Source: Guillardia theta CCMP2712 (lineage: Eukaryota > Protista > Cryptophyta). From it: a stretch of DNA of 64,000 bases. Location of the stretch: NCBI RefSeq assembly GCF_000315625.1, contig NW_005434655.1:742807-806806 (forward strand), in the 5' to 3' direction. Positions 9,342 through 32,779 of this stretch are shown piece by piece (the first letter of the stretch is position 1; every line of letters begins with the position of its first letter). The notes beneath the pieces are model-generated. The model made no database searches and had not been told where the DNA came from. It saw nothing but the letters and a program-made list of their open reading frames with translations. Position numbers and translations under genes: made by a program.

Positions 9342-10319
9342 GGCGACAGATCTAGCCGGAGGGGAGGCTCCGATTGGGCCGCAGCGACGATTGCCAGCCG
9401 ATCACGAATTCCGTGATTCGAAACTCAGGTGAAGGTTGGAAGTTGAAACCAAAAATGTCTCAGCTTTTCTCAGGGCCTTGCCTTGCTCCTCCTGGTCTGC
9501 ACGTGTGACATACCATGATTGCTTCCCTTCCATCTTCACCAGCATGATTTCTCCTCTCCTCTCGTCTCCTCTCCTCTCCTCTCCTCTCCTCCCTTCCTCC
9601 ATGGGCAGTAAATTTCACTAGAACAGAATTTCAAAAAAATGAAAAGATTCGGCTAAGAAAATCACCCTACCCTTGCCCCTCATACAACAGTGCAAAGTAC
9701 CCCTACCTGAATAGCTCGACAAATAAGTTTAAAACATTATATGAGGGTACCAGTCTAAATACATGTGGGACCCGTGATTTCGAGGGGTCCTACATGAAAT
9801 TTAAAACTTTTATATATATTGTATACTATTATATGACGGTAATGGTACAAATTGCTGGCTGTTACAGTACCCGGCATATTCCCCTCACATGAACGGGTAT
9901 GCGAAATCAAGTCACGTTTCCGGTCAACTTTCGGAAGTTCAGTCTCAGTGGAACCCGGGTGACCAGCGGCGCCCCGGCCCGGCACCCGGCCCGGCGACCT
10001 GGCTATCCGATCGGGCCCGGACTCCGGACTCTCTGACTCGGGCCGGCCGTGCGGGCCCGATTCCCGAGCAGTTGGACGCCGTTTCCACAGGCCCTCGGAG
10101 GCGGTTTGCTGATGGATGACTCGGCATGCCTGCCGAGCGGCGTGCATTCTGGGGTCTTTTGTGGAAGTCAATCATTAACAAATCGACGATATTTGCATTC
10201 TGCGTTTCAGGAGACGGGTGGATACTGACCCCTACCTTTTATAGGGGTACTCATCGGTATTTTTAGGGGTGAGGGTACATCGCAATTTCAGGTTGCTGTC
10301 GAAACATACTTTTAAGATT

Positions 10320-10750
10320 AGTGTATTTTAATACAAATCCTCCGTAGCAGTGTTTGTACCTGTGATTGACACCGGTGTCAATGCCTTCGATCTTATGGCG
10401 TCATGAAGGTAGGGTTATCTGCTGTATATCTACCCCCTTTATCGACTGTCGACCCATACCACCCGTATAGGGCTAGGTTCAAATTTTTGTACCAAAGAGA
10501 GCTTGTACACCGGTGCTTTGCTATGCAGAAGTATGATCTCACTGGGAGGTGGGGGTACTTTTAGTACCCTACCCCACATTTTACCTCAAAAAGTATACCA
10601 CCCCTATAGGCCCATATTCAAATTTTTGTACCAAGAAGAGCTTATGTACCGGTCCACATCTATACGGATTTATGTTTCAGTATGTGGTAGGGGTAGTCTG
10701 TAGATGCTCTCCACCCCCTCTTTGATGGCCAAAAGTATATCACCGGTGGT
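10320..10750. repeat. Degenerate ~139-bp tandem repeat upstream of the transposase-like gene
   Basis: ATACCACCC(G/C)TATAGG...TTCAAATTTTTGTACCAA...ACCGGT at 10456 and 10595, with partial copies on either side. Confidence 0.7.
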
Positions 10751-10763
10751 CAGGGGCTCCCGC

Positions 10764-10771
10764 TATATAAA
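10764..10771 (+). promoter_or_regulatory. Possible TATA box
   Basis: TATATAAA about 100 bp upstream of the ATG at 10871. Confidence 0.35.
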
Positions 10772-10870
10772 TCTTTCCTCTTGCCGCCGCGGTCACACTG
10801 CCAGGCCTTGTTACGAACTTTGGTTCAAATCTTGATCCTACATTTGAATCTTTAAGATCCGATTACAGAG

Positions 10871-13537
10871 ATGTTTCTACCAATTCATGCAAAAGAACCC
10901 TCTCTCAAGAAACGCAGAACATCACATTCTATAAAACTTTCTGGATCTTCTCTAGATTACATTGAGACGCTTGCATCGAAAGCGAAATGCGTTTTTGGGA
11001 GGAGGAGCAAGCGTTGTGGTGAGCCAGATGTTACTTCTTTCTTGAAAGGGTTGGGTAAAGATGGTACAAAATCGATTCCTCTTGTGAATCCTTCGTTCCA
11101 TGATGTATGGGAAGAGGTCAGGGCAATTTTGAACTTGCCAGCAGATTTGAATCCCAAGTTTTTCAGCGAGATCACCGACCTTGAAGCTCGCCTGCAATTC
11201 ATAAAGAAGTTTCAAGAGTATGCCTCTCCCGTGCTTGACCTTCTTATGCAAATCGTTGTATCCATATTCGACTTATTAGGTAAAACGCATGAGGAGCATT
11301 TGAAATTTTTAGCTTACCTCTTTATCGACGTTGACACGTTATTGGAGGAGGCAAAGGCGGCAAAGGTAAACCTTGATTGCAATGGTACCCCTGAAAATGG
11401 TGCTCCTCAAAATGACAGTTGCAATCGTGCTGATGAAAATGTCACCAGAAACTGTCAGAATTTAAGTGGCAATGGGTCTTCTGAAATCCTCCATGATAAT
11501 GCAGAAAAAGAAAACGACTGTGTCAATGGAAACAAAGAAAATGCTGGAAACAATGGTAGTGGGTCGAAAACCTTCAAGGGGAGAAGTACGAAAACGAACA
11601 AGTATTCCCCCGAGAAAATAATGGTTGGGCTTGTCAAGAATAGAATGTTCAGAGACTGCATAACTACACAGATAAGGACCAATCTTCATGTACAAAGGAA
11701 ATTGAAATACATTGCCAGTGCTTTCCTTCCAGATGTTCATGAGGCAGGTTGTCTTCTATTGAAGGCCAACCTGTCTAAACAATCATACAACGTGTTATAC
11801 AGGACGCTCGGACGTACAAAAAGATTGGTTGTATCAATGAAAAAAATTGGACGAGCTAGAGTTATGAAGAAAAGGTGGTTGAAAGATGCATTGAAAGCCT
11901 TCAAGACTGACCAAGGAAGTTACGGAACGGATCTATTGTCATCGCTGAAAATGCAAGTGAAAAAGAAGGGATTTCACAAGAAGAAACGCATCATTGTCAT
12001 TTTCAACACCGATGCCACTGTTCTTGCAAAATCTAGTGGATGTGATACAAAACATACTGAAATTACGTATACTATTATCATCCCAAGAGATGAATGTGAC
12101 CCAGATGAATGGAATGAAATTGAAGCATGCATCAGATCAGCATTCGATGCTGCAACTCTCATGATTCTGCCAGTCGGCGATAACGCCAAGAACATGAGGT
12201 TTAATTTCTGGGAGCCCTACGAGCCAAAGATCTTGGACTTGATGCAGAATGGTTTGCGGATTGGTGACGATGTCATTGACGTAGAGGTCATGTTCAGGGC
12301 AGATCTTGCAGGTCATTATGGATTGCTTGAGTTTGGAGGTGTGAGTGATGCCTCCGGCAAGTTTTGCATTCACTGTGATGAGACTAAAGAAGCAAAAAAG
12401 GCGGGCAGGTTCATCGTTCTTAAGCAGAAGAAAGAGGAGGAATCAATCACACTTCGACAATTTTGCAAACGATATAAACTGCTTCCATCTGACATTGAAC
12501 TCCTGAATAAGATGCTCAATTGTCTGGCTGAAACCTCAGATATGACACAATCTGGATTCATGGATCCTGCAGACGTTGGAGAAGATGTATTCCAAACATT
12601 CTTTGAACCATGGAACCAGGAAGCGTTGAGAACTTGTTTCCAACACCCAGACAGCTTGATCCCAGATGGTGTAGTGTTGCCTTGCCTCCATTTTTGTCAG
12701 ATTTTGAGAGAGTGCTCTCGTTTGAAAGATGCCAATCTCAGGACAATTAACTTCATTTACTGCATGTTGCATATGAAGCTCCGCTTCGTGAACTTGTTGG
12801 TCAACTACATTTATGAGCTGGCAGCGAATCAGTCGCAAGTGTCAGCTGTGAACAGAATTCTCCAATCGTTTCATGTCAACATGGAGATGAAGGCGAAAGA
12901 TCAACAAAGACAGCTGAATGGCAAGATGTGCAAACGATTCTTGAAAGCTTTCCCTGACCTTATTGCCTTGCTGGTACCCGATGAGGATACACGTGAACAA
13001 TGGAAAGTAGCGATGGATCAATGGACACATGTGCACGACGTACTATCTTGCCAGCACTACGATAAAATTTCGAAATCAGATGCAGAGGAACTGCCGACAC
13101 AAATCAGAAGCTTTTGTGTGAAGATGATCAACTTGGTAGGAGATGCAAAACGACTGCAAAGTTTTTACTTCCACAGTATGATGATCGGGCACATCGGCGA
13201 GCAATTCGAATATCTGTACAAGGAATATGGGATTCCTCTTGGATTGCTTAGCTTGTCGGCGATCGAAAAACGTCATGAAACACTTGGAAGAAGATGTTTT
13301 AAGAAAGCTATTCCGGAGATTAACTTGTTTACAAGTGGCAAGAGCACTAGCATTTTGCAACCTGACACATCCAAGGAAGACTCCAAAGGAGCGCGTGCAT
13401 TTTACACACTGTTCAACCTTCTACTGCACTCGTTTGAGGGGTGTGACGAAAAGGATCAGGGGGATGCGGTGGTGATGCAGGACTTGCAAAGTGCAGTAGC
13501 AGAATTATTCGATGATGAGGATATGAATGACCTGTAA
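10871..13537 (+). CDS. RAG1/Transib/Chapaev-like DDE transposase, 888 aa, intact
   Basis: Ordered motifs FNTD381A, FRAD478L, FC499IHC502, CMLH634MKLR, LNGKMC, YFH768SMMIGH774 and SAIE799KRH follow the order of RAG1 D600, D708, C727/C730, H795, H937/H942 and E962. The ORF is intronless and paralogous to 28350-30692. Confidence 0.75.
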   Translation: MFLPIHAKEPSLKKRRTSHSIKLSGSSLDYIETLASKAKCVFGRRSKRCGEPDVTSFLKGLGKDGTKSIPLVNPSFHDVWEEVRAILNLPADLNPKFFSEITDLEARLQFIKKFQEYASPVLDLLMQIVVSIFDLLGKTHEEHLKFLAYLFIDVDTLLEEAKAAKVNLDCNGTPENGAPQNDSCNRADENVTRNCQNLSGNGSSEILHDNAEKENDCVNGNKENAGNNGSGSKTFKGRSTKTNKYSPEKIMVGLVKNRMFRDCITTQIRTNLHVQRKLKYIASAFLPDVHEAGCLLLKANLSKQSYNVLYRTLGRTKRLVVSMKKIGRARVMKKRWLKDALKAFKTDQGSYGTDLLSSLKMQVKKKGFHKKKRIIVIFNTDATVLAKSSGCDTKHTEITYTIIIPRDECDPDEWNEIEACIRSAFDAATLMILPVGDNAKNMRFNFWEPYEPKILDLMQNGLRIGDDVIDVEVMFRADLAGHYGLLEFGGVSDASGKFCIHCDETKEAKKAGRFIVLKQKKEEESITLRQFCKRYKLLPSDIELLNKMLNCLAETSDMTQSGFMDPADVGEDVFQTFFEPWNQEALRTCFQHPDSLIPDGVVLPCLHFCQILRECSRLKDANLRTINFIYCMLHMKLRFVNLLVNYIYELAANQSQVSAVNRILQSFHVNMEMKAKDQQRQLNGKMCKRFLKAFPDLIALLVPDEDTREQWKVAMDQWTHVHDVLSCQHYDKISKSDAEELPTQIRSFCVKMINLVGDAKRLQSFYFHSMMIGHIGEQFEYLYKEYGIPLGLLSLSAIEKRHETLGRRCFKKAIPEINLFTSGKSTSILQPDTSKEDSKGARAFYTLFNLLLHSFEGCDEKDQGDAVVMQDLQSAVAELFDDEDMNDL

Positions 13538-13568
13538 ATAGACGATTCTTGAATTTATTGAATGAAAT

Positions 13569-14711
13569 TTAATGTTCTGATTGTGTCTTTGGCCGAGGAT
13601 ATGACCACATGAGTTTGTTTGTGAATCCTAATCTCACAATCTTGGAGAATCTGAACGTGATGGTTGTCTGTGATGTTGAGGATCTGTGTCGAGAAAGTTT
13701 CATTGGCAACATGATATGTAGAGGTCCTTCAAGATAAATGCATCCTCGAGCTGGTCCAAGGAAATAAGGGTTTTCTTTCAAGGGAATATTCAGTTCTTGT
13801 TTGAACAGAGGTGTACAGAGCAAGTTTGAATCTAGAGTCCATGTACACTGCGAGCGCGTCGAAAGACCTGAACACGTTACTTTTGACGTTTCCATCGAAA
13901 AGTGCTTCAAGAAGAACAGTATAGCGCTGAAATCTTGTATAGGAGCATCGAATGCGAGGCGCTTTGCCTTCCTTGGGTTCCAGGTAGTCGATCCTCTTTT
14001 GTCCAACCACTTGTGCAGTTCCTCGCGTAACACACCGAGGACATTGGTAACTTTGAAAAAGTCATAAGCTGATGCAAAATTATCAAAGTACGAGTTGAGC
14101 ATGGTTGAAGATAAGCGAAAGCTCTTAAAGTATTGAATGTGACAACGCTCCTTCCTCTGGACAGTCTCGAAGAAGATCCATCCTACCACACAAACACGCT
14201 GTATCGATGGCGGCCCAAGCGTCAAAGAAATACATGGATACGTCACATTGAAAACTCTGAAAACATCGGATATTGGAACTACATCCGTGTAAGTGCTTTG
14301 AAAACACTCGTGCGGTGACATCCCGTCAAGAAAATTTGTGTTTCTCATCTCATTGTTCATTGAAAGCTTTTCAAAAACTTCTTGAATGGTTGACTTATTG
14401 TACAGAAGGAAAACTTTCAACGAATCACCAATGATATGCGTAATCATCCCAAATCGTTCTTTTCTATCGACATCAAAAAAAGCGACACCAAGAAATGGCT
14501 TAAGCATAATGTCACAGTTCCAAGATTCCATATGAAATTGAAGAGTGTTCTCTTGAGCTGGAGGTATAGAGGCTGATAGAAGAAGCGGGATTTGAACAAT
14601 AGTTGGAACATTTCCAGGCTTCTCGTTAAGTTGGACTCGCCTTTCCCTATTGTCACTGAACCTTCTGCTTGCATCTGCTCGCTCTGCTGCCGTCCTGCGG
14701 ATTCTTGGCAT
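13569..14711 (-). CDS. Convergent partner protein, 380 aa, with a BAH-like N-terminal region and an unknown C-terminal domain
   Basis: Intronless ORF and clear paralog of 27034-28182 (shared WNPRKA.RL.FD and LF..EL.IPLK.NPY.LGPARG.IYLEGPL). ECFQSTYTDVVPISDVFRVFNV resembles the C-terminal motif of BAH domains. Confidence 0.7.
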   Translation of the reverse strand: MPRIRRTAAERADASRRFSDNRERRVQLNEKPGNVPTIVQIPLLLSASIPPAQENTLQFHMESWNCDIMLKPFLGVAFFDVDRKERFGMITHIIGDSLKVFLLYNKSTIQEVFEKLSMNNEMRNTNFLDGMSPHECFQSTYTDVVPISDVFRVFNVTYPCISLTLGPPSIQRVCVVGWIFFETVQRKERCHIQYFKSFRLSSTMLNSYFDNFASAYDFFKVTNVLGVLREELHKWLDKRGSTTWNPRKAKRLAFDAPIQDFSAILFFLKHFSMETSKVTCSGLSTRSQCTWTLDSNLLCTPLFKQELNIPLKENPYFLGPARGCIYLEGPLHIMLPMKLSRHRSSTSQTTITFRFSKIVRLGFTNKLMWSYPRPKTQSEH

Positions 14712-15765
14712 ATTGATTGGATTCAGAGCTAGAGGAGGAGGGGAACTTAAGTTCGTAGTAGCAAGGATGAAAGCAGGGGGTCTCGGAATATATTCGGAAG
14801 GATGGAAGGAAGGAGGAGGAAGAAGGGAAGGAAGGAGAATGCGGAGGGGCGGGGAAGGAAGCGAGCAAGTCTGTTCAAATTATAATATTGTAAGTTACGA
14901 CAAATTGTACCTGATAAACGTTAAGGAAACATGTGAAAAATACTTTTACGAGAGTATTTCAAAACAAGCTCCATTTCTCAATATGAAATTTGAAACTTCG
15001 GTGAAACCAGAAACATGACCCCCCATTTCCCATACACTACCCCCAAGACCCCAACTTCCAGAGAAAGCCCCAGAATGGTGCATGTCACGCCGGCCCGGAT
15101 AGCCGCTGAGTCCAGTTCAGTGACAAAACTCTTCCGACCATACTCCGACGCCCCTTACTATGTGACGCGGACTTCTCATGTCTGGATGCTTCGGTTTCAC
15201 ACGAGTCCGTGTTCCTCCATACAAGTCTAACTTGCCCGGCCGCACTGGCTGGCAGGCCCTTCGGAAGTTCACCAGGCCCGGGCCGGGCCTGGTGAAGGGG
15301 GACTCCCGGAGTCCGGCAAGAGAGTCTGCCCGGCTTGGCCGGCCCCGGGGGGCCCCGCCGGCAAGTTCCCTGGTCGCCGTCACAGGGGCGGCGCCGCGCC
15401 TTCGGAGACTCATCGGCAGCATCTTCATCCGATGAACTTCGGAACCGTCAGTCGGAGTCGGAGGGTGAGCGGCTGCCGGTCTCGTAGCTGCCGCGGTTGC
15501 GGCTGCTGAGCGGCTTGTCCCCGACAACCGTCACCGGGAAGGGTACGGAAGTTCCGTGGCAGTGGCACTAGCCTCCTGTCGCAGCCTGGTCTTACGGCAA
15601 TTCATGGGAGTCCCACCTACAGTACGTACATTGAGTCATTCTCGTTCATACTGTACTATTCACGTATTCAATAGTAATCAACACTTGGTTCACATTATCT
15701 CTATAGCTGACATCACCCTGACTTCGGCCGTGGCAGCAGCGGGTTCACTGTGTGATGCTTTTGCT

Positions 15766-17294
15766 TGATGAAACCTACCACTGCCAGTATCGGAGCCTCT
15801 TGAACCGTTGCCGTCTGCCTCATCCCAGTTCCCATACCCATACAACCCCCTCAGCAACTTAGCTATTCCTTGTCGTATGATGGGTATGTCCTTCTGTCCA
15901 AAGTTGTCGATGCCCTCTCCAGCAGCTACATTGTTGGCGATTACACACAGAAATATTGCACATGATGTGCTATCTTCCTGAATTGGCACCTGCCGATACA
16001 CCATCAGCGTTGCACCTGGTCATATGCAACGTAAGTGAACCTGTCCTTCTCTCATAACTCGCTTCTCGTATGCACCCTCTAAGCTATCGTCTGTCTGCCA
16101 TTTGTAGCGGAGATATTTCAAGAAGCCTGTATGTTTCACACAGGCCAACCCTGTCGTCAGCCATGTGGCTTCACGTTGGTTGTCAGCTTCCACTTACCTT
16201 CAATCTGGTTCAAAACGCCGATACCGGTCATCCCCTTGGGGTCATACAATCTGCATCCCCAAATGCTCGTTACTCGTGGTTGGTGTACAAGTCCCACTTA
16301 CTCCAGTCGTCTTTCTCCCATGTAGGCAATTGCCAAACACCAGTGTCCGGGTTTAAACACGGGAATCAAACATATACCTGTATCCATCTCTTCTCTGCTA
16401 ATGTGTTTCCAATAACGCAAAAGCTCTTCATATCTTCGTCTCGCTGTCACGGTGTTGGATGCAGCACCAGTAGTGTGTAGCAATTCCAGATTGGGATAGA
16501 AATAGGTGGAGACAAAGTCAATTTTCCGATGCTTAATGTGCCTGCTACAACAGTGTCCCGGACGCATTCAGAACTCCATTTGACCAGATGCAGCCAACTC
16601 TCCACCACGTCGCAGCTGATACATTTAGACATATCGCTTACATCCTGAATAGTCGCTTCGGACAGGTTGGGGATAGCATGATTGATAACCTTTCCCCCTA
16701 TGAAGGTCATATCGTTTCCCAGGAATACATCTCTCATATATTTGCATTCATACTCCTCTCGCACGTTCACCACATCATCATTCGTTCCCTTGTCAAACAA
16801 TTGCATATGCTTAATCTTCTTGCTGGGCTTCTTGGCAATCGTCATGATTCTGCGTTGTGTGCCGTTTACCTTGCCAAGTTGTTTTCATTGGGAATCTCCA
16901 CCCCAGGATCTACGCGGTTGCCTTGTTCTCGCGAACCTTGTGATGAGTGAGGATCCGTTTCGCATGACCTGTTGTTATGCCCCACCTTTCCACAGTCCTG
17001 ACACGTTTTCTTGCGATTGCCATGTATGGTGTATAGCTCACTGTAATCGAGATCTTCCGGAGCCGGATCATCCTTCCCGGGTGGCTGATGTCTTACTCGT
17101 CTACGTTGCCCGCGACGCTTAGATGAGGAGTAAAAGTCCGGATCGCCTTTGTTAGGTATCATATGCGCGCCGGGATCCTGCCTCCAGCTTGGGATTTCGC
17201 AGGAGGGGGAGAGAATGGGTTTGTAGGGTTTAAAGGAAACTCGCATGAGAACCGGGAACATGTCCCGGAGTACAGACACTGTCAGCAACTGCAT
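15766..17294 (-). pseudogene. Ulp1/C48 SUMO-protease-like gene preceded by a zinc knuckle; probable MULE-type transposon remnant
   Basis: CQDCGKVGHNNRSC (CCHC knuckle), IPVFKPGHWCLAIA, LE/intron/LYDP and PIQEDSTSCAIF together give the H, D, Q and C catalytic pattern of C48 peptidases. The sequence is fragmented across frames and introns. Confidence 0.6.
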
Positions 17295-18859
17295 CGATGA
17301 ATGTCGTAGTTAGCCAATATGGATGAAATAAACTCTGTTATTCCATGATCATGGTGAGTACTGTACCAAACAGCGATGGCGTGATAGTCCCTTTCGTTAA
17401 ATCTTGACCTCAAGTCGATTCCTCATCATCCAGGGTAATGGTTTGCTTGCTTCGTCTGCAGGAACTTCCTTGCAAAGGTGGGGATGACGAATTTGATAGA
17501 TTTGGTCCTGACATGATTAATCAACGTTTCAATGTTCAAAATCCCAAGTCAAATTGCAAGATCACACTGGCATGTGTCTCAACTTGTGCAGAGGCAACTT
17601 GCCTCTGGGAAAAATTCAATTCCCTGAAATAGGGATGGGTGGGGGACAGCGGGGACTACCCTACCCCCGATTTGTGAAAGCACTAGGTGGGTCCGGTATA
17701 CTGTTAACAGTTAGGTCTCTGGTACAAATTTTAACTGTTAACAGTTAACCGTTTTTCAACGGTTTTCATCTAACTGTTAACCTTTAATCGACAAAGGCCT
17801 CCCCTGGGAATCCCGGACTCCCCGGGGAGTCCCTTTTTCGAGCCCTCATACAGCCCCCTTGGAAGGGCATAAAGGCGGGGAAAATGGCAGGGGAAGGAAG
17901 AGGGGAGGAAGAACTTTCCAACGCTGAAATTCGCGTTGCAAACGACCAACCCGTTGTCGAGATAGGACAGGAGATAACTGTGAAAAGTAAGCATGCCGTT
18001 CACAAACCCATATGCAGCCCCTAGCAAATCTGGTCTTTTTTTTTCTACTTTTTTTGGGGTTCACATGGGGTCCGTATATACACTCCCTGTTGACTACCCC
18101 TTGTTTTCACCGATCAAAGGAGGGGCAGAGAGACTGGACATAAGCGGGGTGGGGTGATTTGAATTCCTCTGGCGTGGAACCCTTCCCCCGCCTTGGTTTT
18201 AGAGGTACTGCAATTTTAGTTTTACCCATCACGTACATGGTAGTATAGATTGTACTGTATGAAGACATATTGGTACAAAAGAGAGGTTTCATGGTACAGA
18301 AGTTCCCCCCTCCACCACCCTACCCCCTTTTTATCTCCTCACAGAGGATATTTGAATCCACAGAGAAATCCCTCAATGCTCACTGTTATGAATACTCACT
18401 GTTATGCGCATCCACCAGTCATTTATGTCGCATGACGTTTCTTCCTCAACAGCATCCCGTCACTGTGCGCTGGAGGAACGGGCTTCCTGGCAGTCTCCTC
18501 TCCATCAGGACTCGTCGGAGATTCTGTTCCTGGAGCCGCCCCTGGTGTTCGGCCTATGCATACTAGAGCGGACAAGTACGTGCAGCCGGGGTGGGAGCTG
18601 GAGAACGCTATCAGGGATGCGACTAGGCTGGCACCAAGAGCTGAGGAGGCTAGTCGTCCTCTTCTACGCTGGCCATGGGATGAAGGCAGGAAGGGCCAAA
18701 GAAGACGACCTGATCCCCTGTGAGGTAGGGACGATGGAGACCGAGGAGGAGGTAGAGGACTACACTGTGACTCTCAGTCTGTTTCCTTGTTGTCATCGAT
18801 GCCTGCAGATACCGGGAGGGTCTGCAGGAGACGGGACGGCTGCTCCCGCAGCAGGCGGC

Positions 18860-19386
18860 CAAAGACGTCCTGCCTCTATCATTCAACTGCTGGTGCCTGA
18901 CAGAGACAAACAGCTTCTTTGGGAGGAAGCTATTTCGAAATTGAAGAGAAGGAAGACGTCAGGGGTGTTGCTTTCAAGTTGCTTTCAAGTCGGACAAGCG
19001 AGACTGCTGCAGTCTTTCTATTTGCACAGCGGCATGATGTCAGGGCATGTGGGCGATCAGTTTGTACATTTCTACGAGAAATATGGCATTCAACTAGCCT
19101 GACTATTGAACATGTCGTGCATCGAGCATCAACATCAACTTCAGGGAAGAGATGCATATCGAGCTGCTGCCATGATCGGGAACAGCTACATTGGACTCGG
19201 AAAAGAAGGAAGCTGCTACTGCATCTAACGGGCAACTTGACCATGTGTGGGATATGCACTGTCCGTGCGGTAGTCACTGATGGACCTTCACGAAATGCAG
19301 ATGACAAGAAGAAATTCAACAATTCGGTTCGAGCACACTTCACTTTGTTGTGGCAGCTCCTTCAAAGTAAATTAATGTCTGAGTAA
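18860..19386 (+). pseudogene. Decayed C-terminal fragment of the RAG1/Chapaev-like transposase
   Basis: QLLVPD..., LQSFYLHSGMMSGHVGDQFVHFYEKYGIQLA*LLNMSCIEHQH and (frameshifted) VRAHFTLLWQLLQS align with the C-terminus of the 888-aa protein. Confidence 0.75.
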
Positions 19387-20096
19387 AGTCGCGTTCAATC
19401 TGGATGCCTCCAAATCTCTGTGTGAAACGTGCACAATCGTACCATTCTCTCGAACTTGAAAGAGATGCATGTGTATTGCGTCCTCTAATTTCGTTTTCAA
19501 TTTCGTTTCAAGGTGACTGTCAGTGCGCCCTCGAAACTTGAAATATAACGAACCTGATCCAGGTTCTATCGTGTAGGGTTCATCCTTGAAAGGCACAGGA
19601 AATTCTCTGTTAATGACAGGATTCTGTAAGAGTGATGTACTGATGGTCCAACTGCACTGGCCTTTTCATCCGGGGTTTCAAGAAGGGCTTCCCACGTTTG
19701 CGAAACCAGTTAACTATACTACCGTAGTCCTAATCTTGTGCAGATCGATGTTGAGACGGAAGAAATCAGTTTGTTTTCTAGTGTTAAAGAAGTTGACATT
19801 CTTCCTTTCCAATTTCGGATGATTCCACTTCGAAATTTCCCATTGACATCAGTAAACCTCACACCATGACATGGTACCAGATTGAATGACATGTCTAAAC
19901 CTTCAACGTGGTGTAGTAATTCAAAGTGCACAGAATGATCGAAGGCATTTGCTGCAAGGAACAACGGTGCCCCTTGGATGTATCTCATGCGAATGAAGAG
20001 GATCAACTTGTTCTCTTGCTCCAATCTCCTCCTTTTGGCAATGCCGAGCGATGAGGCAGCCCTTGACGACGGTGGCCGCCCCGATTGCGCCGCCAT
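19372..20096 (-). pseudogene. Decayed copy of the convergent partner gene
   Basis: AKRRRLEQ..., DMSFNLVPCHGVRFTDVNGKFRSGII and PFKDEPYTIEPGSGSLYF match the 380/382-aa proteins; frameshifted and internally deleted. Confidence 0.7.
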
Positions 20097-20335
20097 TGTC
20101 CGTCAAGGCAAGGACTGAGGATTGCAACTGGTACTGAAAGTAGTACCATAGGGTATGTGTCGGTACCGTACTGTAACTACCGTTAAAATAACTTGTAAAG
20201 AGGATTGTTGAAATCAACTAAAACAAATGGGTACTATGAAGTGGGGTCTCTAACTCGTTTATCAAAATAGCACGCCTAGAAAAAAAAAAGACCCTACCGA
20301 AAAATTTAAGTGCCAAATTAACGAAAGGCCTGAAA

Positions 20336-22580
20336 GTGAACGGCATGATGTTTGGCCGTTTCAGGCCTGCAAAGAGCATTCTCATGGGCATGCATAGATG
20401 CGATTGGAACTCCGTCGCGATAACTGGAAAGGTGATAGCGAAGTGTGGGAATGGTAGATGGATGGTTGATTGGTACTTGCCTGGTGAAAGAATGAAAATT
20501 AGCGTCTTGGAGAGTACCTTACGATCCACATTGTTGCCTGGGGAAATGCCAAATTTGCAAAATTCTACCAATGTTTCCGCTGCCCGCGATGTAGCCGCGT
20601 CCGATGACGCTGGCTCTAATGATGTAGTGGTGTCTCATCATGACCCTGTCCCTATGCAAGGGGAATCAAACCATGAAAATGATTCCTCTTCGCCTATGAC
20701 CATCAATTGCAATTTTGGAGAAAATGTCCTCGTTTGGCAGTTATCACCGACTGGTGTTGCAGAAGATCAACGACTGTCAAGTGGATTTGCAATGCGCAAA
20801 ACTGTGATTCGCTGGACACCAGCTCTGCAGATCCTTGACGAGAAAACTCCATTTGATTGCTGGAAATTTCTGCTTCCGTGGAAGTATTTTTTCGGAGATT
20901 GTGACGAAACTGGATGTTGTTTGCTCTGGACGAACAATTCTTTGCCAGCAAATGTGAAACCGTTCACTGTACATGAATGGCTTCAGTTCATGGGTGTGCT
21001 GTTCATGAGAACTCTACATCCACACGGTCCAATAAGGAGTTTATGGGGCAGCGATTACGACTCTGCCAGTCCGCCTGTTGATTTGGGTAAGCGCTTTGGA
21101 GTCAGTCGTTGTCGATTCGAACAATGGCGAAAGCACATAAAATTCGCTCCTCCGTATGCATACATTACAGACAATGCTTTTAATTGTATCCGACCCCTTA
21201 TACACGCTTTCAATGCGAACAGATTGCAAACAATTCGTCCTGGATCTGAATTGATTTTGGATGAAAGCATGGGTAAATGGATACCAGTTGCTGAGGTATC
21301 CTACCATATTGTGTTGGAAATTTGTGTGACTGACTTTGTATGAAGGACGTTGATGATGGAATCCCATTTCTAACAAAAATTGCCCGAAAACCACAAGGTA
21401 TTGGCAGTGAGTACAAGAACATTGCAGAGTGTACCTACGGAATTATGTTGCAGCTGGAGTTACAAGAAGGCAAACGAGTGATGGAGAATCAAGAATTTAC
21501 TGATCAATATCCGAAGCATACATCATGGGTTCTCAGATTGATGAATCCTTACTTCAACCAGGGTCACATTCTTTACGCAGATTCCGCGTAAAGAATGTGC
21601 GTAAAGAATGTGACCAGATTCCGCGTGATTAACGCGTTATATGAAGACGTTGAATATTTTCTCCTGGAGCTTGGCCAATACTTTCGATCCTATCTGAAGC
21701 CATTATTTCCTGTTCCATGGGCTATGTCAGGAGGATTCAAGTCCAAGTTGGCTCCGATCAAAGCTCTGGCGTATATGATATGGGAAGTCAGAAAGCGCAG
21801 TGGGAATCTCAATGCCACTCCGGATAAAACGCGGATGGAGCTTCTGACGCTGGCAAAGTCGAAATTGCCTGACATATCTACCTTCCACAGCGTTATGGTC
21901 CAGATGAAGATCCTGCTTAACAAGTTGGAAGATGTAGCGGGAGAGGAATCAGTGAAAGCCTTGGAAATGATTTTGGTGGAGGAGCTGATCAAGCAATGTT
22001 ATCTCTCAGATTGTGCCGATATTCGAGATGTCGCGCGCTTGAATAAGCGGTCCAAGTTGTCAACCGAATTGACTTGGGAGGAGGTGTACTCTTGGGCTGT
22101 AAATTTGAATGAGTTTGGCATTGATTCAACGATGTCGATGACTGATATTCAAGGAATGGCAATGCAAATTCGGTGAATACCAGAAGAAACCGATCGGAGG
22201 CTAGTGCAGTAAGAGGTGCTACGAAGACCGTATCAACTTCATGGCAGCATAATGGCAGGGAAATGTTCATTTTCGGGCATGCATGGAATGAACCTGGCAG
22301 GCCTGATACCCCAAGAAAACTTCTCATTTCGACATGGAATACAACAGAAGAAACCGATCCCCATTTGAAAATTCGGTATCGACGGAAGGGTCAGCCAGGA
22401 ACAGGGAAGAAAAAAACACTGTCAACGCCAAGAACGGCCATGATCAAGTCATATTTCAACGGAGCATCTGTGATCGATGTGCACAATCACCTGAGACAGA
22501 GTGGACTGGGACTGGAAGAAAAAGTTGGAACTCATGACTGGAGATTCAGAATGTTCTGTACGATACTTGGGTTCGTTGAA
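20336..22580 (+). mobile_element. piggyBac-like (DDE_Tnp_1_7 type) transposase, disrupted
   Basis: SRCRFEQW, LILDESMGKW, KIARKPQGIGSEYK, LYADSA and YFNGASVIDVHNHLRQ. Probable intron at ~21296-21345; interrupted at ~21590-22170 and truncated at ~22580. Confidence 0.8.
21626..22169 (+). repeat. Inverted copy of a Copia gag segment (source 22733-23275) inserted in the piggyBac-like ORF
   Basis: Near-identical peptide INALYEDVEYF...IQGMAMQ in ORFs 21595-22176(+) and 22449-23612(-). Confidence 0.9.
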
Positions 22581-23630
22581 ATTACAATTAATCTTTCCTC
22601 CTGCCGTCATGACAAAGAAATCGTCTCCCGATTGTACGTCTGAGAGGAGGGATTCGTCCCCAACCATGGTAACATTTGCACCAGAATCAAGCAAAAAATT
22701 GACAACCCTTCCGTCACCGTCTCCTACCATACTTTGCATTGCCATTCCTTGAATATCAGTCATCGACATCGTTGAATCAATGCCAAACTCATTCAAATTT
22801 ACAGCCCAAGAGTACACCTCCTCCCAAGTCAATTCGGTTGACAACTTGGACCGCTTATTCAAGCGCGCGACATCTCGAATATCGGCACAATCTGAGAGAT
22901 AACATTGCCTGATCAGCTCCTCCACCAAAATCATTTCCAAGGCTTTCACTGATTCCTCTCCCGCTACATCTTCCAACTTGTTAAGCAGAATCTTCATCTG
23001 GACCATAACGCTGTGGAAGGTAGATATGTCAGGCAATTTCGACTTTGCCAGCGTCAGAAGCTCCATCCGCGTTTTGTCCGGAGTGGCATTGAGATTCCCA
23101 CTGCGCTTTCTGACTTCCCATATCATATACGCCAGAGCTTTGATCGGAGCCAACTTGGACTTGAATCCTCCTGACATAGCCCATGGAACAGGAAATAATG
23201 GCTTCAGATAGGATCGAAAGTATTGGCCAAGCTCCAGGAGAAAATATTCAACGTCTTCATATAACGCGTTAATCATCGCGGCATCCATCTCCTTGCCATC
23301 AGAATCCCTTCGGCTTACCCCCTTCTTTTTCTTCTTGCCAGAAGCACTCACTGGATTGCCGGAATCACCGTCATCAACGGGACTACCATACTGATCCGAC
23401 ACCGTCTTGGACAAATTTTGCAACTGCTCCACATAATCTCGAATCTGCCCGCTCTTCCTCCAACAAAATTTGGCATTCAGGAAAAGCAAAACGACCAACT
23501 CGCCATCCACATTCACACTCTTGTTCTTTTCCCATACAGTATGAAACTCACCACCAAAATTACCGAGTTGATCGAGTGGAAACTCTCGTATCAGCGGGCC
23601 CGGGCCAAACACAAGCCCAATCCATTCATT
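22581..23630 (-). mobile_element. LTR retrotransposon gag + aspartic protease fragment (Copia-like)
   Basis: FLLDSGANVTMV protease motif after a helical gag-like region; adjacent to a Copia RT. Confidence 0.65.
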
Positions 23631-23744: not shown

Positions 23745-24789
23745 AAATACGGTCTACAAATATGAACACAACGGTTCACGACTTCTTCTTACGACATGGG
23801 TGGATGATCTTCTTATTGTGTGTGAAAATCAGGAAGTATGTGATCATTTTCTGAATCAGCTGAGCAAGGTATTTGATTTTTCTGGAAGTGAAGCCACTGG
23901 TACATTTCTTGGGATTCGTGTTCATCAAGATTTAACGAAAGGGACTATCACGCTGAGTCAGAAACATTTCATTGAACAACTGATTGACAAGTTCGGAATT
24001 CCTCTGCGTTCAGTGTTTACGATCCTTCCTGGTTTGTACATGCGGACTTATCATCTTGAAGGAGAATTGCTAGACAAATCTGCAGTGCGGCAGTATCAAG
24101 CACTTCTTGGGACAATTCTGTATATCGCAAATGGCACAAGAGCAGACATTGCCTTCGCTGTTAGTCTTCTGAGCAGATTTTCGAGAGCGCCCAGAGCTCG
24201 TGATTGGGAGGCGCTGCTACATCTCGCGAGGTATTTACACACTACAAGAGACATTTGTATCGTTTATCACAACAGAGGAGTATTTGTGAATCAAGAAATC
24301 CTTCACAATCAGCTGGTGGCAGCTAGCGACAGCGACTGGGGAACTGATGTTTTGACAAGGAGGAGTCAATCTGGCTACGCGATTGTGATGAACGGAGGTG
24401 TAATCTCATATGGATCCAAGGCACAGAAAGTTATCTCCTTGTCATCGTCAGAGGCAGAAATTTATGCTACCTCTGTAGTTGCCAAACACGTCAAGATGTA
24501 TCGTAACTTGCTACAGAAGTTGGGGTTTCCACAGTCCGGCCCGACGATGTTGCTCCTGGATAACGAGCCCTGTATCCGTTTGCTGACAGAGAAGAGAGCT
24601 TATTCTCGGTTGAAACACATAGATGAAGGGGATCTGTTACCTGTGAAGGTGCCTACAAAGTTTCAGCCTGCGGATTTGTTCACAAAGATTTTGCCATTGA
24701 CGAGATGGAAAGCAGTGAGTTCTTTTCTCTTTGGTGAAGATTTGAATTACTTTGCCTTGGGAAGTCATGGCGACGAGCTGGATGAGTGA
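23745..24789 (+). mobile_element. Ty1/Copia reverse transcriptase C-terminus + RNase H fragment
   Basis: WVDDLL, FLGI, YQALLG..LY, TRADIAFAV, SDSDWG, SSSEAE, DNE, KHID and QPADLFTK. Confidence 0.9.
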
Positions 24790-27033
24790 CACATCTCTGC
24801 TTACGATTATGAGTGCGTGACTCATTAGGTGTGCAAGCTTGGGGGGTGGAACAATGTTGGAAAGAAGGATTCTTGTCAGCCAGGGTGGCGCAGTTGCAGG
24901 ACATGGGGGGAAAGATTTTCTACAGAATCAAAGCAGTATGATTTCTGTCGCAACTGTGTGCTGACTGTAGTTGTAGAGACTGCCTGGAGACAGCGCTTTG
25001 GGAGCAACTTTGAACTTCAGTGGGATTTATCCCAGCTTGAATACAATGGGGTTCATCGTACAGCTGGTATCAACGAGCAATCGCCTGCACCAATCTCTGA
25101 TTCAGGGAGGGAGAACCTTGGAAGGAAGGTTTGATATTGAGAAGTAGAATCAGATGATTGGCATGGCGTGGTATCAAGCTTCTTCTCCCGAAGACTGTTC
25201 AAGGAACTCTAGGTCAAGTCAAGCAGATTAGGATGTGAAGCCTCCCATCATGATCGCAAGATACAAGACCTATGATCGCAAGAATTGAAATGAGAATTGA
25301 AATTGATGAAAAATCGGCCGTTAAGAAATTGAGAAATTGAAAATGAAGAGATGATTGATGGGGAAAGGCAAATGAAAGAAGATCATATGGTCAATATGAG
25401 AATTGAAATGAACATGCATGCAAATGAAATCTCAAGAGCTCTCAGGTGAAATGGCGCCAAATCAATCTTTCATACCGCGGTTAGATAGCGATTTGTTAGA
25501 TGGGCCCGTAGAGCAGGATAGTTAGGACAAACACATTGGTCATGAATGAGGTGGACATCATTGGGTGGAAAATTTGGATTGAGAAAGTCAGATGGGTGAC
25601 AATTGAAATCGGATGGGATTTGAAGCACAATGATGGGATGGATGACGAGATGATCAGAAAGGTGTCTGGGGAGCCTGACTGATCAGAGGGGAAGCCTGAC
25701 GAACAAGTGCAGTGCGGCACAGTCGAGTTCAGGTGGTGGAGGAGTGTTGATGGTACTGACGAGGTTTCTATGAAGGAGAATATGTAGGTAAAAGATGGAT
25801 GGAAGGAGCTTGGAGCATGGACTGAGGAGGATCTAGGGGGAAGAAGCAGCTTTGATCTTGGAGGACGAGATTGCGATTCAGGAAGACGCAGGGAGGAGCT
25901 TGCGTGGAGGATGCAGGAAGCTTGATGGAGGAGAAGGTGATGCAGGAAGGATGCAGGAAGCTTGGAGGAGGAGAGCGCGGTGTTGCAGCTTGGAGGAGGA
26001 GAGCGCGGTGTTGCAGCTTGGAGGAGGAGCAGGGAGATGTTTAAAAAGGGGGTTCCCAGAGGATGAAGGATGAAGTGGAAAAGGAAGCTGAGAATCTCGC
26101 TGAACTTCGTCAGGGAGGGTGTAAGAACTCGGATAAGTTCTTGGAGACGGCGAGAAGTTCAGGGTATTGCGTCTCATCGGTGGACAAAGCTCAGCGAGAT
26201 GGAAGTGGGTTTCGACATAGGTCTGGAATTAAGGAATCGACGAGCCTGAGGGTCAGGCGGAGAAGAGGGGGTTAGGAGGACACGTGTCCATTGCGCGCTG
26301 TGCATTGTACTGGGTTACAAGGGACTGAAGGGAAGGTGACTGCTGTGAATAAAGGAAGTGTTGGTGGTGTTGTGTGGTTCTTCTGAGAGTTCTATCACCA
26401 TCAGTGAAGGTGTTAGAGACTGCACAGCTGTGTATCGTTGAGGTGAATAAGGTTGGTGTGAGGATCTCAGGTGTACTGAGAGTTAGTCTTTGGTGGATCT
26501 TGGGTTAAACAGAATTCTGGCCAGTGAGGTGGAGGTTGATTCGATTAAACTTCAAATCCGATCAAATTAAGCACCGCGATTGTTTCATCGCGGTTAGTTA
26601 AATTTAAAAGTTAGATTTTTAAACTCCCCTGGTGAGCCCCCCTGACCCGCCTTGGCTCCATGCTGCCCCTCCCGCACTGCGGCGGCATAAGTCGCCCCCA
26701 ACGCGCTGATCATCAAGAGCAATGCTCCTCTTACTGGGTTATCCTATGATACACATCGATAGCATCCAATACACCGTAAAGTGCACTTTCTCAATCCATC
26801 ACATTCTGTAGGATTTTGCTAAGGTACGCCTTAATTCTGTGTATAGGGTAGTCGCTGGGAAATAAGGGGTGGTATCTTGGTTTGAATATTAGTACCAGAT
26901 AATTTCAGATGGTCTCAAATCTAGATTGAAAGTGAGGTTATAAATAATTTTAGTCAGGGATAATAGTACAAATTAAAATATTCTTATTTCCGTCTCTGAG
27001 GCTCTCCCCCAGACACCTACCTCCTTCATCGGC

Positions 27034-28182
27034 ATGGATCGACGCAATGCAGCTGCAGATGCGGACTTGAAAAGAAGAAAGCTGGAGCAGAGAGATCATG
27101 AGACAGGGCTAAATATCCGAGAAAGGGTAGTTGGTGAATCTAGAGCGCAAATCCCCCTATGCTTTGCATCACTTGAGGCTTCAGATGTCTTGAATGCTCC
27201 TAAATATTTCTCTTGTGACTGGGACATGGAGTTTGATTTGATTCCTTCTGTTGGTGTCTTTTTTCACGATGTGCATAAGAAGCATAGATGCGGATTGATC
27301 AAGGAAGTCACTGCAGATAAAATGCTTGAAGTGTATGTGCTGTACAGCAAAGAGACTTTGACGGAAGTGTTTGAGAACATTTCCCAAGCCGACAAGCGAA
27401 GATATCGCAGATATCTCGATTCCATGCAACCCAACGATTGTTTTCAGAGCATCTACACTGATATTCTTCCACTGGCTGATGTGGTCGGAATATTCAAAGT
27501 TACATTTCCTTTCTGTTCTGTCCAAAGTGCCATTCAGAGTACTCTACAACATTTGCGTGTGATCGGATGGCTTTGTTTTGAAAATGTGAACAGGGACGAG
27601 CGACTCCAAATGGGGTTCTTCCAAAAATTTCGTCTGACAGCTGATATGCTGCACTCATATTTTGGACAACCAGGAAATACGATCGATTATTTCAAAACCT
27701 CTACAGAGCTTGGGATAATCAGAGACACTCTAAAGCGATGGCTCAATGCTCGTGGAGCTGTTAATTGGAATCCAAGGAAAGCAAGGAGGCTTGACTTCGA
27801 CATTCATATTCCTGTATTCAATTGCATACTTGCCTTATTGCAAAAGGTCCCAATTGATGACAAGCTTGTTACGTGTGCGGGATCAGAAAATGGGAAACAA
27901 TTCACTTGGTGCATAGATGCAGAATTGTTGAAAACTGCTTTGTTTCAGAGAGAGCTGCACATCCCTCTCAAAGCGAATCCTTATGATTTAGGACCTGCGA
28001 GGGGCACTATCTATCTTGAAGGTCCGCTGTATTTTACACTCGTTTCCAAGCCTAGCTTGAACGTCGATCGAGCTGTAATTAAAATGAAATTTTCGAGAAT
28101 CGTGCGATTAGGCTGGAATAATGAAAATAATCTGGGAATTCCCAGACCCTTGACTCTTTTGGCGCTTCGTTTTCTCCGATGA
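27034..28182 (+). CDS. Convergent partner protein, 382 aa (paralog of 13569-14711)
   Basis: Colinear similarity to the 380-aa protein over nearly its full length; basic NLS-like LKRRKL at the N-terminus; BAH-like DCFQSIYTDILPLADVVGIFKV. Confidence 0.7.
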   Translation: MDRRNAAADADLKRRKLEQRDHETGLNIRERVVGESRAQIPLCFASLEASDVLNAPKYFSCDWDMEFDLIPSVGVFFHDVHKKHRCGLIKEVTADKMLEVYVLYSKETLTEVFENISQADKRRYRRYLDSMQPNDCFQSIYTDILPLADVVGIFKVTFPFCSVQSAIQSTLQHLRVIGWLCFENVNRDERLQMGFFQKFRLTADMLHSYFGQPGNTIDYFKTSTELGIIRDTLKRWLNARGAVNWNPRKARRLDFDIHIPVFNCILALLQKVPIDDKLVTCAGSENGKQFTWCIDAELLKTALFQRELHIPLKANPYDLGPARGTIYLEGPLYFTLVSKPSLNVDRAVIKMKFSRIVRLGWNNENNLGIPRPLTLLALRFLR

Positions 28183-28349
28183 TTCTCCCTCCCTTAGTGC
28201 TTTGAAGGAGAGTGGAGGGGATAGAACGCAACATACGTTTACAACGCAGCATACGTTCTAGTAAACGTATGTTCATCGGATTAAGAAGGAGAGCAGAGGG
28301 GAAAGGACAAACGATACAGATTAGCCGCAACATACATTTACTAGAACAA

Positions 28350-30692: not shown

Positions 30693-30720
30693 TTCAGGTT
30701 GAGGTTGAGCAGTTGAGAGC

Positions 30721-30979
30721 TCAGGCTGAGAGCTTGGGTGCTCACTCGAGTCAGGCTGAGAGCTTGGGTGCTCACTCGAGTCAGGCTGAGAGCTTGGGTG
30801 CTCACTCGAGTCAGGCTGAGAGCTTGGGTGCTCACTCGGCGAGTCAGGCTGAGAGCTTGGGTGCTCACTCGAGTCAGGCTGAGAGCTTGGGTGCTCACTC
30901 GAGTCAGGCTGAGAGCTTGGGTGCTCACTCGAGTCAGGCTGAGAGCTTGGGTGCTCACTCGAGTCAGGCTGAGAGCTTG
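30721..30979. repeat. 30-bp tandem minisatellite, 8 full units plus a partial one
   Basis: TCAGGCTGAGAGCTTGGGTGCTCACTCGAG repeated; one unit has a 3-nt insertion; degenerate copies extend to ~31050; no spacers. Confidence 0.95.
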
Positions 30980-32779
30980 CCAGGCGGCCGGCGCGGCAGT
31001 GAAGGCGGCGGCGGCGGTGCTCAGGCTCAGAGCTTGAGAGCTCAGGCTGAGAACAAGAATCTCTCTACCATCATCACCCCAATCTGATGCCTGGTGCGCT
31101 TCAAAACTCGTTTGACTTCCAGAATCTGTACTAGTGCGTGGACGATACCCAGCCCGCGCAAATTCAAATCCCCAGCTTTTTCAAATAAGTGTCCACGTAC
31201 CGGTGGTTTGATACACGACTAGGGGGTAGGGTTTGTTCCCCACCTACCCCGGTGGCCATAACCTCACAACAGGACCGGTGCATAGTCAAACAAAGGTACT
31301 GTATCAATTGTTTACAGTACAAATATGTATAAACTTTGTACATATATATACATTTAAAATAAAATAATACGAAGTATGGTACAATTATGCCTAACTATGG
31401 TACCAAAAATCTGTACCTTTTATTTGAACAAAAATACAAGCATTAAAAACAAATTCAACGACCGCTCTGAAACCAATCTACCACCTCTACCCCCCCAAAT
31501 CCAGTGATAATGACGGGTCATTACCTATAACCGGTACTAAGACCCAGAGAACTGAGAAAAGCCACTTTTCCTTTGTTTTTCCTGGTCAAAAACCTACAGA
31601 ATGTCACGTTGAAAGATTTCACGTCAAGATCCGATGTATTGCTGCTGTCAATCGAGTTGGATCATAGCTATCCAAGTTTATTCAAAAGCTAGCACTGATT
31701 ATTCCAGGGACAGCAACAGGTCTCTCAGACACTCATAAATACGCAACCAAGACGGACTCTGTCATGAGGAGGGTCGCAACGAAGACTGTCTGTCATGACT
31801 CAAACATGAGGTGATAGCGATGTCCTTCGGAAATGTCGGCTCAAGGTGAACACCATTTCGCAGATGTGAAGCTGATGATGTCGTGAATTCTAATTTCGCA
31901 GTCGGTGTATTCAAACTTGGTATGTTTGTCTGACTTTACATCGTCCGATGATGTGCATTGGTCATGTTTTTGAAAGCTATAGTTTGTCTGTAATAAAGTC
32001 ATTCTTACCGAGCTCTTATCATCATTTAAGCCCATGCCAGCTCACTTGTTTAAACTTAGAGATCTGTTCTGGTTGCCCTTGTGTTCGACATTGGCATCGG
32101 AAGCACCGGAAGTTGATCTGCGTTCGGAAGCATAGCATCTTGCACACATTTTTGCATGTACCGCCATTAAAATTTCACTCTTTTGGACGCATATTTTGAA
32201 AATTGATGACGAAAACGAAAATTTGCTGGAATACTGTTAACAGTATACCGGAACACTTTTCATGCTAACTGTTAACAGTAAAATAAGGCCCGAAAGAATT
32301 TAACTGTTAACAGTATACCGGACCCACCTACTAGCAGAAAAGGACCCGGTGGCTTCATTCTTGTACCAAACCCAGAAACACAGTACACATTGAATTTGAA
32401 TCAGGTACCAAAAAAATTGGAACATTTGTATTGAATTTCTAAGTCTTTTCTACTGTGTTTCCAATTTATATTTATTTTATGATTATTCGTATCTTTCTAA
32501 AACGTTTTCGCAGCCTTAAAACATGTCGTCTGTTAAAAGTTTCGAGGGGAGTGGAGTGGTCTTGAAGGTTTCCGCCCATGCCAATTCAAATACCCCACCC
32601 CCTATTACTCAATGATAATGGGGGTAAAAGGGTGCTTCGGTGCAAGGGCAAGTACCCGTATAAGTGCAGTCAAAAGTACCGGTCATGAAAAGCGCTAATC
32701 AACAATCCTGGATTTTCATATTCAGCTGCAGCGCCCCCAATCCGGGCCCGGCGGTGGGGGCCGCCGAGGCGGCAGGGGT

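Follow-up and report, generated by a model that had tools for sequence, protein, structure and literature searches.

A two-gene inverted-repeat transposon of Guillardia theta with a predicted RAG1-fold transposase and a predicted BAH-fold partner

A stretch of 64,000 nucleotides from the cryptophyte alga Guillardia theta CCMP2712 (NCBI RefSeq assembly GCF_000315625.1, contig NW_005434655.1, positions 742,807 to 806,806 of the forward strand; hereafter the window, numbered from its first letter) contains a real and intact two-gene DNA transposon at positions 10145-15077, in which a transposase gene and a smaller partner gene converge between terminal inverted repeats (TIRs). Taken together, the evidence is probably best explained by a TIR transposon that combines a transposase of RAG1-like fold with a BAH-fold accessory protein acquired separately from RAG2.

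Structure of the element

The complete element measures 4,933 bp, and both of its open reading frames (ORFs) lie inside inverted repeats beginning CATTCTGGGG. The first 10 bp of the TIRs at 10145 and 15077 are identical and 20 of 24 positions match overall (giving a TIR length of 10-24 bp), and the trinucleotide GTG on both flanks constitutes a 3-bp target-site duplication (TSD). A first-pass annotation, made from the sequence alone, had missed these ends and had described two long convergent ORFs separated by 31 bp between their stops; both are uninterrupted over the coordinates listed below, in a genome whose host genes are full of introns. The features of the element (coordinates, strand, description) are as follows.

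10142-10144, no strand: left TSD copy (GTG)
10145-10168, plus strand: left TIR, matching the right end; nine further genomic sites match from about 10145 onward
10456-10744, plus strand: subterminal direct repeat upstream of the transposase, two ~150-bp copies that are 72% alike
10871-13537, plus strand: ORF1, DDE transposase of 888 aa with a predicted RAG1-like fold (ORF, alignment, predicted structure)
12401-12688, plus strand: insert after the CxxC motif, about aa 511-606, with a LysM-like module (profile, Pfam and weak structural matches)
13538-13568, no strand: A+T-rich gap of 31 bp separating the two stop codons (ORF map; RNA-like contigs meet at 13543-13546)
13569-14711, minus strand: ORF2, partner of 380 aa with a basic N-terminal helix, a BAH-fold domain and a C-terminal alpha/beta domain (predicted structure)
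14121-14561, minus strand: predicted BAH-fold domain of the partner, aa 51-197 (structural matches of the model)
15054-15077, minus strand: right TIR, matching the left end
15078-15080, no strand: right TSD copy (GTG)

The subterminal direct repeat is a candidate promoter region or a candidate binding region for the transposase or its partner. The autonomous copy itself is single in the G. theta assembly (87.1 Mb in 669 contigs, searched for family copies), and a freshwater metagenome contains a copy that is 98.5% identical but differs in its right flank, which fits recent movement. The occurrence of just one exact autonomous copy in the assembly might suggest a domesticated pair of host genes or an error of assembly, a reading that is refuted by the TIRs, the TSDs, the many dispersed copies with differing flanks, the non-autonomous derivatives and the metagenome copy, and whose probability is negligible.

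The transposase

The codons of the putative catalytic residues D381, D478 and E799 lie at 12011, 12302 and 13265 of the window, respectively. Across an alignment of 15 family members, D381, D437, D478, C499, C502, C631, H634, R638, H768 and H774 are invariant, with E799 close to invariant; H802 is also conserved in the family. In a wider alignment of 63 homologs, extending down to 15-20% identity, the catalytic and zinc-site columns are kept in every covering sequence except for one E at position 381, the C(2)C motif after the second D (C499/C502) occurs in 56/56 covering rows, and the further zinc-type motif C631xxH634 is likewise kept. The histidine pair is spaced as H(5)H in cryptophyte copies (H768/H774) and as H(3-4)H in freshwater and green-algal relatives. 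All of the residues named in the first-pass annotation (D381, D478, C499/C502, H634, H768/H774 and E799) are present and conserved in both alignments.

The predicted model of the transposase core (aa 230-860; pLDDT 89, pTM 0.86) places D381 on beta1, D478 after the last core strand and E799 at the start of the post-insertion helix, and the acidic triad would thereby occupy the expected elements of an RNase H fold. All 49 Foldseek matches of this model at E<=0.001 are RAG1, BbRAG1L or HzTransib (best E 5e-11; Hermes next, at 1e-2), in agreement with the RAG1/Transib-type fold that had been proposed from the motif layout. The VIA structural ranking gives RAG1 (Z 19.6, 463 residues aligned, root-mean-square deviation (rmsd) 7.5) and BbRAG1L (Z 19.1, 428 aligned, rmsd 3.7) above Transib (Z 12.8), the P element (11.6), ISCth4 (9.0) and Hermes (7.6); the description "nearest to RAG1" is conditional, since no solved CACTA, Chapaev, Mirage or Lanisha transposase structures appeared in the fold searches. 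Among the predicted models of the Atlas, RAG1, EnSpm (Transposase_21) and unnamed Mucoromycota, rotifer and streptophyte clusters are tied at TM scores of 0.54-0.63, the EnSpm clusters (TM 0.57-0.61) showing likeness at the level of the fold only. Sequence searches of Pfam and PDB with the window protein and its profile gave no CACTA match, and a search of a viral structure library returned nothing significant. The Pfam family PF06918 matched none of the sequences searched, controls included.

The insert after the CxxC motif is assigned to LysM by a profile match to the LysM domain of LytE (E 8e-6), by PF01476 (LysM) matches in 5 homologs (best 3e-6) and by a weak structural match of the region to 4lzh (Z 4.6), and the LysM-like insert is retained in distant relatives of the transposase. 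By its predicted structure the transposase has a RAG1-type fold and motif layout, yet it is probably not a RAGL.

The partner protein

The predicted model of the partner (pLDDT 81) begins with a basic helix, continues with a domain rich in beta strands and ends in an alpha/beta domain. BAH-containing chains fill its top 19 VIA rows (Z 10.7-6.2, the next row falling to 4.8), with the match spanning residues 51-197 and the best matches including the BAH chains of ORC1b, polybromo, DNMT1, EBS, AIPP3 and Sir3; Foldseek also retrieves the Sir3 BAH domain (E 7e-6). No kelch propeller or PHD finger is found among the structural matches of the model, and the C-terminal alpha/beta domain has no structural match in the searches with the whole-partner model. 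Searches of Pfam and PDB sequences with the window protein and its profile gave no BAH match, and an Atlas feature search with the partner came back blank. The models support a chromatin-reader-type (BAH) fold unrelated to RAG2, in line with the earlier suggestion of a non-RAG2, possibly chromatin-reading protein.

Linkage, co-divergence and expression of the two genes

Among the 24 loci of this genome at which the match to the transposase extends into its C-terminal part, 23 have the convergent partner directly downstream, and the genome-wide co-occurrence raised by the first-pass annotation is thereby supported; the single exception (C65) is cut off beside telomere-like repeats. Transposase and partner trees share the same topology for 11 matched pairs (Mantel r 0.98, p 1e-4), dN/dS (the ratio of nonsynonymous to synonymous substitution rates) is ~0.2 for both genes in the C154/C285 pair, and every family, down to ~20% identity, has retained its partner, with no exchange of partners from one family to another. 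The congruence of the trees suggests joint retention without shuffling; physical contact does not follow from it. The ~17 loci that appear to carry the partner only include two that were examined, and both turn out to be 2.6-kb deletion derivatives in which TIRs and remnants of the transposase persist.

Each gene yielded one RNA-like contig (10976-13546 and 13543-14838), the TIR regions being without coverage; these contigs cross both ORFs free of gaps, in keeping with a lack of introns. No excision joints were seen in the reads, and a chromatin immunoprecipitation (ChIP) run covers the repeated flanks and not the element interior, a pattern that can be read neither as absence nor as enrichment.

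A transposase that works alone, with the BAH gene as long-retained cargo of anti-silencing or regulatory function, would accord with the anti-silencing TET/JBP cargo of fungal CMCT elements (PMC12730594), with the ~17 deletion derivatives that retain much of the partner frame in the absence of the transposase, and with some distant loci that lack a detected partner. Cargo genes are usually patchier than a partner that persists unswapped in all families, and this alternative is considered unlikely.

Family copies and target-joining geometry

Two further family members are found in the window.

17992-20347, plus strand: internally deleted non-autonomous copy with CATGCCGTT ends and no TSD (end mapping; empty site)
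26802-31603, minus strand: copy with CATTCTGTAGG ends and the TSD TCA; partner at 27034-28182 (plus strand), transposase ending at 28350 (minus strand) (end mapping)

Elsewhere in the genome, four non-autonomous derivatives of 2.3-2.5 kb have the same ends as the 10145-15077 element, and their TSDs (three of 3 bp and one of 4 bp) include two of 3 bp that were checked against the uninterrupted 332-bp satellite into which they had inserted. Duplications of 3 bp also flank the C154 copy (AAC), the third window copy at 26802-31603 and seven derivatives of the latter. Overall, the CATTCTG-ended copies have a 3-bp TSD in 13 of 14 cases and a 4-bp TSD in the other, the 13 TSDs having a G+C content of 46%, and the families with 3-bp TSDs form one clade of the transposase tree that shares these ends. 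All mapped family ends begin with CAT (the C31, C72, C100, C105, C296 and C307a-group families being those without mapped ends), and a 3-bp duplication is missing from the 13 copies of the other CAT-ended families for which both ends were mapped. The empty site of the 17992-20347 copy is present elsewhere in the genome with its flanks joined and no base gained or lost, and two satellite insertions show a 1-bp loss and a 0-1-bp overlap, respectively. The presence of a 3-bp TSD in the CATTCTG clade and of none in its sister families indicates that target-joining geometry differs between sister families.

The 332-bp satellite adjoins seven coding copies and 5 of 8 examined derivative ends, with many insertions located elsewhere. 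It is a G+C-rich tandem repeat with units that are 99% identical (L064, G000:C285:27300-29000, and short contigs), it is carried by small contigs (C307, C340, C560, C296, C319, C282, C367, C322, C521 and C523), and it is a candidate centromeric or subtelomeric repeat.

Several other observations concern individual copies. An empty-site paralog at G000:C8:2981-3024 has 4 extra bases beside the insertion point, a possible excision footprint. Short telomere-like TTTAGGG runs occur at broken ends or flanks of copies (G000:C65 ~469470, C113 ~208900 and ~211650, C17 ~992800), and possibly mark breaks that were made by the transposon and then healed, or a second element that ends in such runs. At G000:C285:21344-22170, a 5'-truncated copy without a left TIR adjoins an armadillo-like repeat ORF, a possible host-gene fusion. 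The left end of a CATATTGG-family member (C9/C242/C65 type) is split between window positions 17418-17686 and 32266-32743, which suggests inversion or nesting across the transposon cluster.

Relatives beyond G. theta

The nearest named protein homologs are from Guillardia theta CCMP2712 and Hanusia phi, the only two genera reached by word-indexed protein searches. A profile search extended the family to 169 relatives, including other cryptophytes, a freshwater metagenome clade, Cymbomonas, Mesostigma and Klebsormidium. In the freshwater clade, many loci of which are re-samplings of the same organisms, a homologous partner is found downstream in 21 loci (convergent in 20), and freshwater partners align with the Guillardia partner profile at hhalign E values of 1e-7 and 2e-6. 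A partner was found at 18 of the 26 distant loci with >=3.5 kb of downstream sequence; the partner alignment excludes the L027 neighbor, a kinase-like ORF.

The Klebsormidium relative (K. nitens protein P0099, profile E 2e-8) belongs to a 13.7-kb element with ~36-bp CACTAC-type TIRs and a possible 2-bp duplication (one case), and has a convergent gene with a weak, sub-threshold Pfam BAH match (E 7e-4). The convergent genes of Klebsormidium and Cymbomonas, which were searched piece by piece without joined spliced models, gave no significant alignment to the partner profile of Guillardia, so that homology is argued from their position and from this sub-threshold match. The same Klebsormidium gene region contains DUF7081/MBD-like pieces (L132:20288-20734 and 19297-19788, minus strand; E 1.5e-9), a second chromatin-reader-like module. 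Genes adjoining two other distant transposases (L125:11081-12106 and L127:7171-7893) have an HxD...H pattern like that of 2-oxoglutarate dioxygenases and no Pfam match, and could be TET/JBP-like cargo.

Comparison with known systems

The definition of the CMCT clade comprises a C(2)C and an H(3-4)H motif, termini of the CA..TG type and TSDs of 2-5 bp (Kojima 2025, PMC12730594). The G. theta element shares with this clade a predicted DDE RNase H fold, the C(2)C motif, CA..TG termini and a 3-bp TSD, its sister families having no TSD; the element fits the published clade, its histidine spacing being longer.

The closest candidate name is Lanisha (Maumus, McDaniel, Carey; PMC8245031), which has been placed in CMCT (PMC12730594) and was described as RAG1-type by HHpred, without BLAST matches to Repbase, 10-12 kb long, with 35-40-bp TIRs, 5-8 ORFs and K. 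nitens homologs (bioRxiv 10.1101/2020.07.03.163634 supplement). Its families, found in Rhizophagus, a coral and a fern, take a position between Transib/RAG and Chapaev at a bootstrap of 28 (PMC12730594 Data S4). By these descriptions, rather than by sequence, the likeness lies in a RAG1-type transposase detectable only by remote homology, in TIR elements with extra ORFs and in homologs from K. nitens, and the two may belong to the same lineage. If the G. theta element were a compact cryptophyte member of Lanisha, only its two-gene form and the BAH annotation would be new. Consistent with such a placement, P0099 lies in an element that comes close to the Lanisha size and TIR length, and the top four Atlas structure rows are clusters from Mucoromycota (two), Rotifera and Streptophyta. 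Differences in size, ORF number and TIR length (4.9 kb, 2 ORFs and 10-24 bp versus 10-12 kb, 5-8 ORFs and 35-40 bp), the mention of neither a BAH partner nor a LysM insert in the Lanisha descriptions, and the absence of moss, fern, Rhizophagus or coral sequences among the 30 profile matches whose source was looked up make membership a tentative, if serious, possibility.

The ProtoRAG/RAGL and RAG1-RAG2 systems (PMC9435367, PMC10629977) provide the best structural match of the transposase core, have tail-to-tail genes between TIRs and, in RAG1-RAG2, include a chromatin-reader fold in the second protein, as is predicted for the partner here. The element differs from them in a partner composed of a predicted BAH fold and a C-terminal domain without a match instead of a kelch propeller or PHD finger, in CATTCTG ends instead of a CAC heptamer like that of recombination signal sequences, in 3- or 0-bp TSDs instead of G+C-rich TSDs of 5 bp, and in the LysM insert of the transposase. 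The first-pass annotation had interpreted the pair as a RAG-like system in which RAG2 was replaced by an unrelated protein, i.e., a true RAGL/ProtoRAG descendant. Such descent would agree with the higher scores of RAG1 and BbRAG1L than of HzTransib (Z 19 versus 12.8), with the lead of RAG1 clusters in the Atlas feature search (0.96), with the similar tail-to-tail layout and with the existence of RAGL in the alga Aureococcus (PMC9435367). It is made doubtful, and improbable overall, by the ends and TSDs, by an identity of only 12-15%, by the lack of competing solved structures and the tie among Atlas models, and by the fact that convergent layouts are common among two-gene transposons. The RAG1-type fold, the TIR transposon and the constant convergent pairing of that interpretation stand, and the two-component transposase and the "replaced" RAG2 are conjectural: because the ends and TSDs are not those of RAGL or Transib and no sequence similarity to RAG1 was detected, independent acquisition of the partner within CMCT is at least as likely.

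Transib elements, as represented by HzTransib, share the fold and the zinc-site motifs, whereas they are single-gene elements with CAC-type ends and usually a 5-bp TSD, as opposed to two ORFs, CAT ends and 3 bp, and no sequence similarity was detected; a preprint on the Nozomi lineage shows that TSD length can vary (5, 3, TA) within Transib (bioRxiv 10.64898/2026.08.26.747230). With no RAG2, CAT ends and no 5-bp TSD, the element is neither ProtoRAG nor Transib. EnSpm, likewise, uses a second protein. EnSpm/CACTA and PlavakaB elements resemble the G. theta element in CA..TG ends, 2-3-bp TSDs and the C(2)C and histidine motifs, with PlavakaB ends also beginning CAT (PMC12730594); they differ in that the 63 homologs have no Transposase_21 or Plavaka Pfam match, and in that the G. 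theta element has no CACT termini and its second gene is convergent and separate. Spy (PHIS group) inserts without target duplication (cited in PMC12730594), a likeness to the sister families lacking TSDs that is limited to the insertion outcome, the transposase group being unrelated.

Chapaev elements have a Chapa zinc-finger N-terminus, CAC ends and a 4-bp TSD (3 bp in Chapaev3). No conserved cysteine-rich N-terminal motif occurs in the 15 family members, and the 3-bp TSD overlaps with that of Chapaev3. The searchable literature on Guillardia with RAG1, Transib or transposase superfamilies includes no paper describing the G. theta family or its BAH partner, and the supplements of PMC9435367 contain neither Guillardia nor Klebsormidium. 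The novelty claimed by the first-pass annotation is tempered by Lanisha, a published RAG1-type multi-ORF superfamily to which that annotation gave no consideration.

Proposed mechanism

By analogy with RAG/Transib chemistry, as suggested by the fold and motifs, a transposase dimer would most probably bind the CAT-ended TIRs and the subterminal repeats, and the element would be excised by a nick followed by a hairpin on the flanking side. The 3'-OH ends would then be joined to target DNA with a stagger of 3 nt, as shown by the duplications, or of about zero in the sister families. The partner is probably an accessory subunit whose BAH domain would attach to nucleosomes and thereby recruit the transpososome to chromatin at the ends or at targets (e.g., the 332-bp satellite), a physical partnership and targeting role that are proposed here by inference; it would fall into the same class as the PHD finger of RAG2, the Myb protein of Harbinger or the TnpA of EnSpm, having presumably been acquired separately from RAG2. 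A more far-reaching version is rather improbable: a superfamily-level lineage apart from Lanisha and close to RAG1/Transib, in cryptophytes and green algae, whose LysM-insert transposase functions only when complexed with a BAH nucleosome reader, which directs insertion to a heterochromatic satellite, as an independent analogue of RAG1-RAG2, with sister families having switched between 3-bp and blunt joining.

Several observations count against a RAG1-fold transposase working with a BAH accessory. Pfam and PDB searches with the transposase protein and profile gave no sequence match to RAG1 or Transib, and the H(5)H spacing of the cryptophyte copies deviates from the H(3-4)H of CMCT, the distant relatives having the shorter spacing. 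Linked genes on one element co-diverge whatever their function, and no partner could be detected at 8 of the 26 distant loci that extend >=3.5 kb downstream. The RNA nature of run X1 is a guess, and the raw-read RNA run X16 gave just 13 reads.

Other elements in the window

Positions 20336-22643 contain piggyBac/IS4-like transposase pieces (PF13843, E 2e-6) with the CATGCCGTT-family copy inserted in their 5' part; these pieces are interrupted by a 543-bp Copia gag-like inverted duplication (21626-22168 / 22733-23275). A perfect 29-bp inverted repeat (17379-17407 and 23925-23953, 6.5 kb apart) encloses the nested elements and disrupts a Copia reverse transcriptase (PF07727 at 23800-24789). Fragments at 15690-17294 (minus strand), with weak similarity to Ulp1 proteases and zinc knuckles, probably derive from a further degraded DNA transposon. 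Seven or more near-identical genes, some in each orientation, occupy 35328-62995, and their products combine coiled-coil repeats of charged residues with a P-loop (AAA_22, E 1e-3) and, at the C-terminus, a nuclease-like motif; the array resembles CRN/RHS-type multigene families, and several members contain N gaps. Inside it lies a non-LTR reverse transcriptase element (PF00078; 1,403 aa; 53618-57829, minus strand), a fragment of which is found at 33026-33793.

Significance

In the evolution of RAG it is an open question how a Transib-like transposase of one subunit became dependent on a partner that reads chromatin. The G. theta family supplies what seems to be a second and independent instance, in a cultured alga whose copies are intact and apparently expressed. 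It is unusual for a DDE transposase to contain a LysM-like module, and dozens of family copies in G. theta have gone unrecognized in annotation, being invisible to Pfam. The close relatives with 3-bp or no TSDs constitute a natural experiment on the determinants of strand-transfer spacing in the RAG1 fold.

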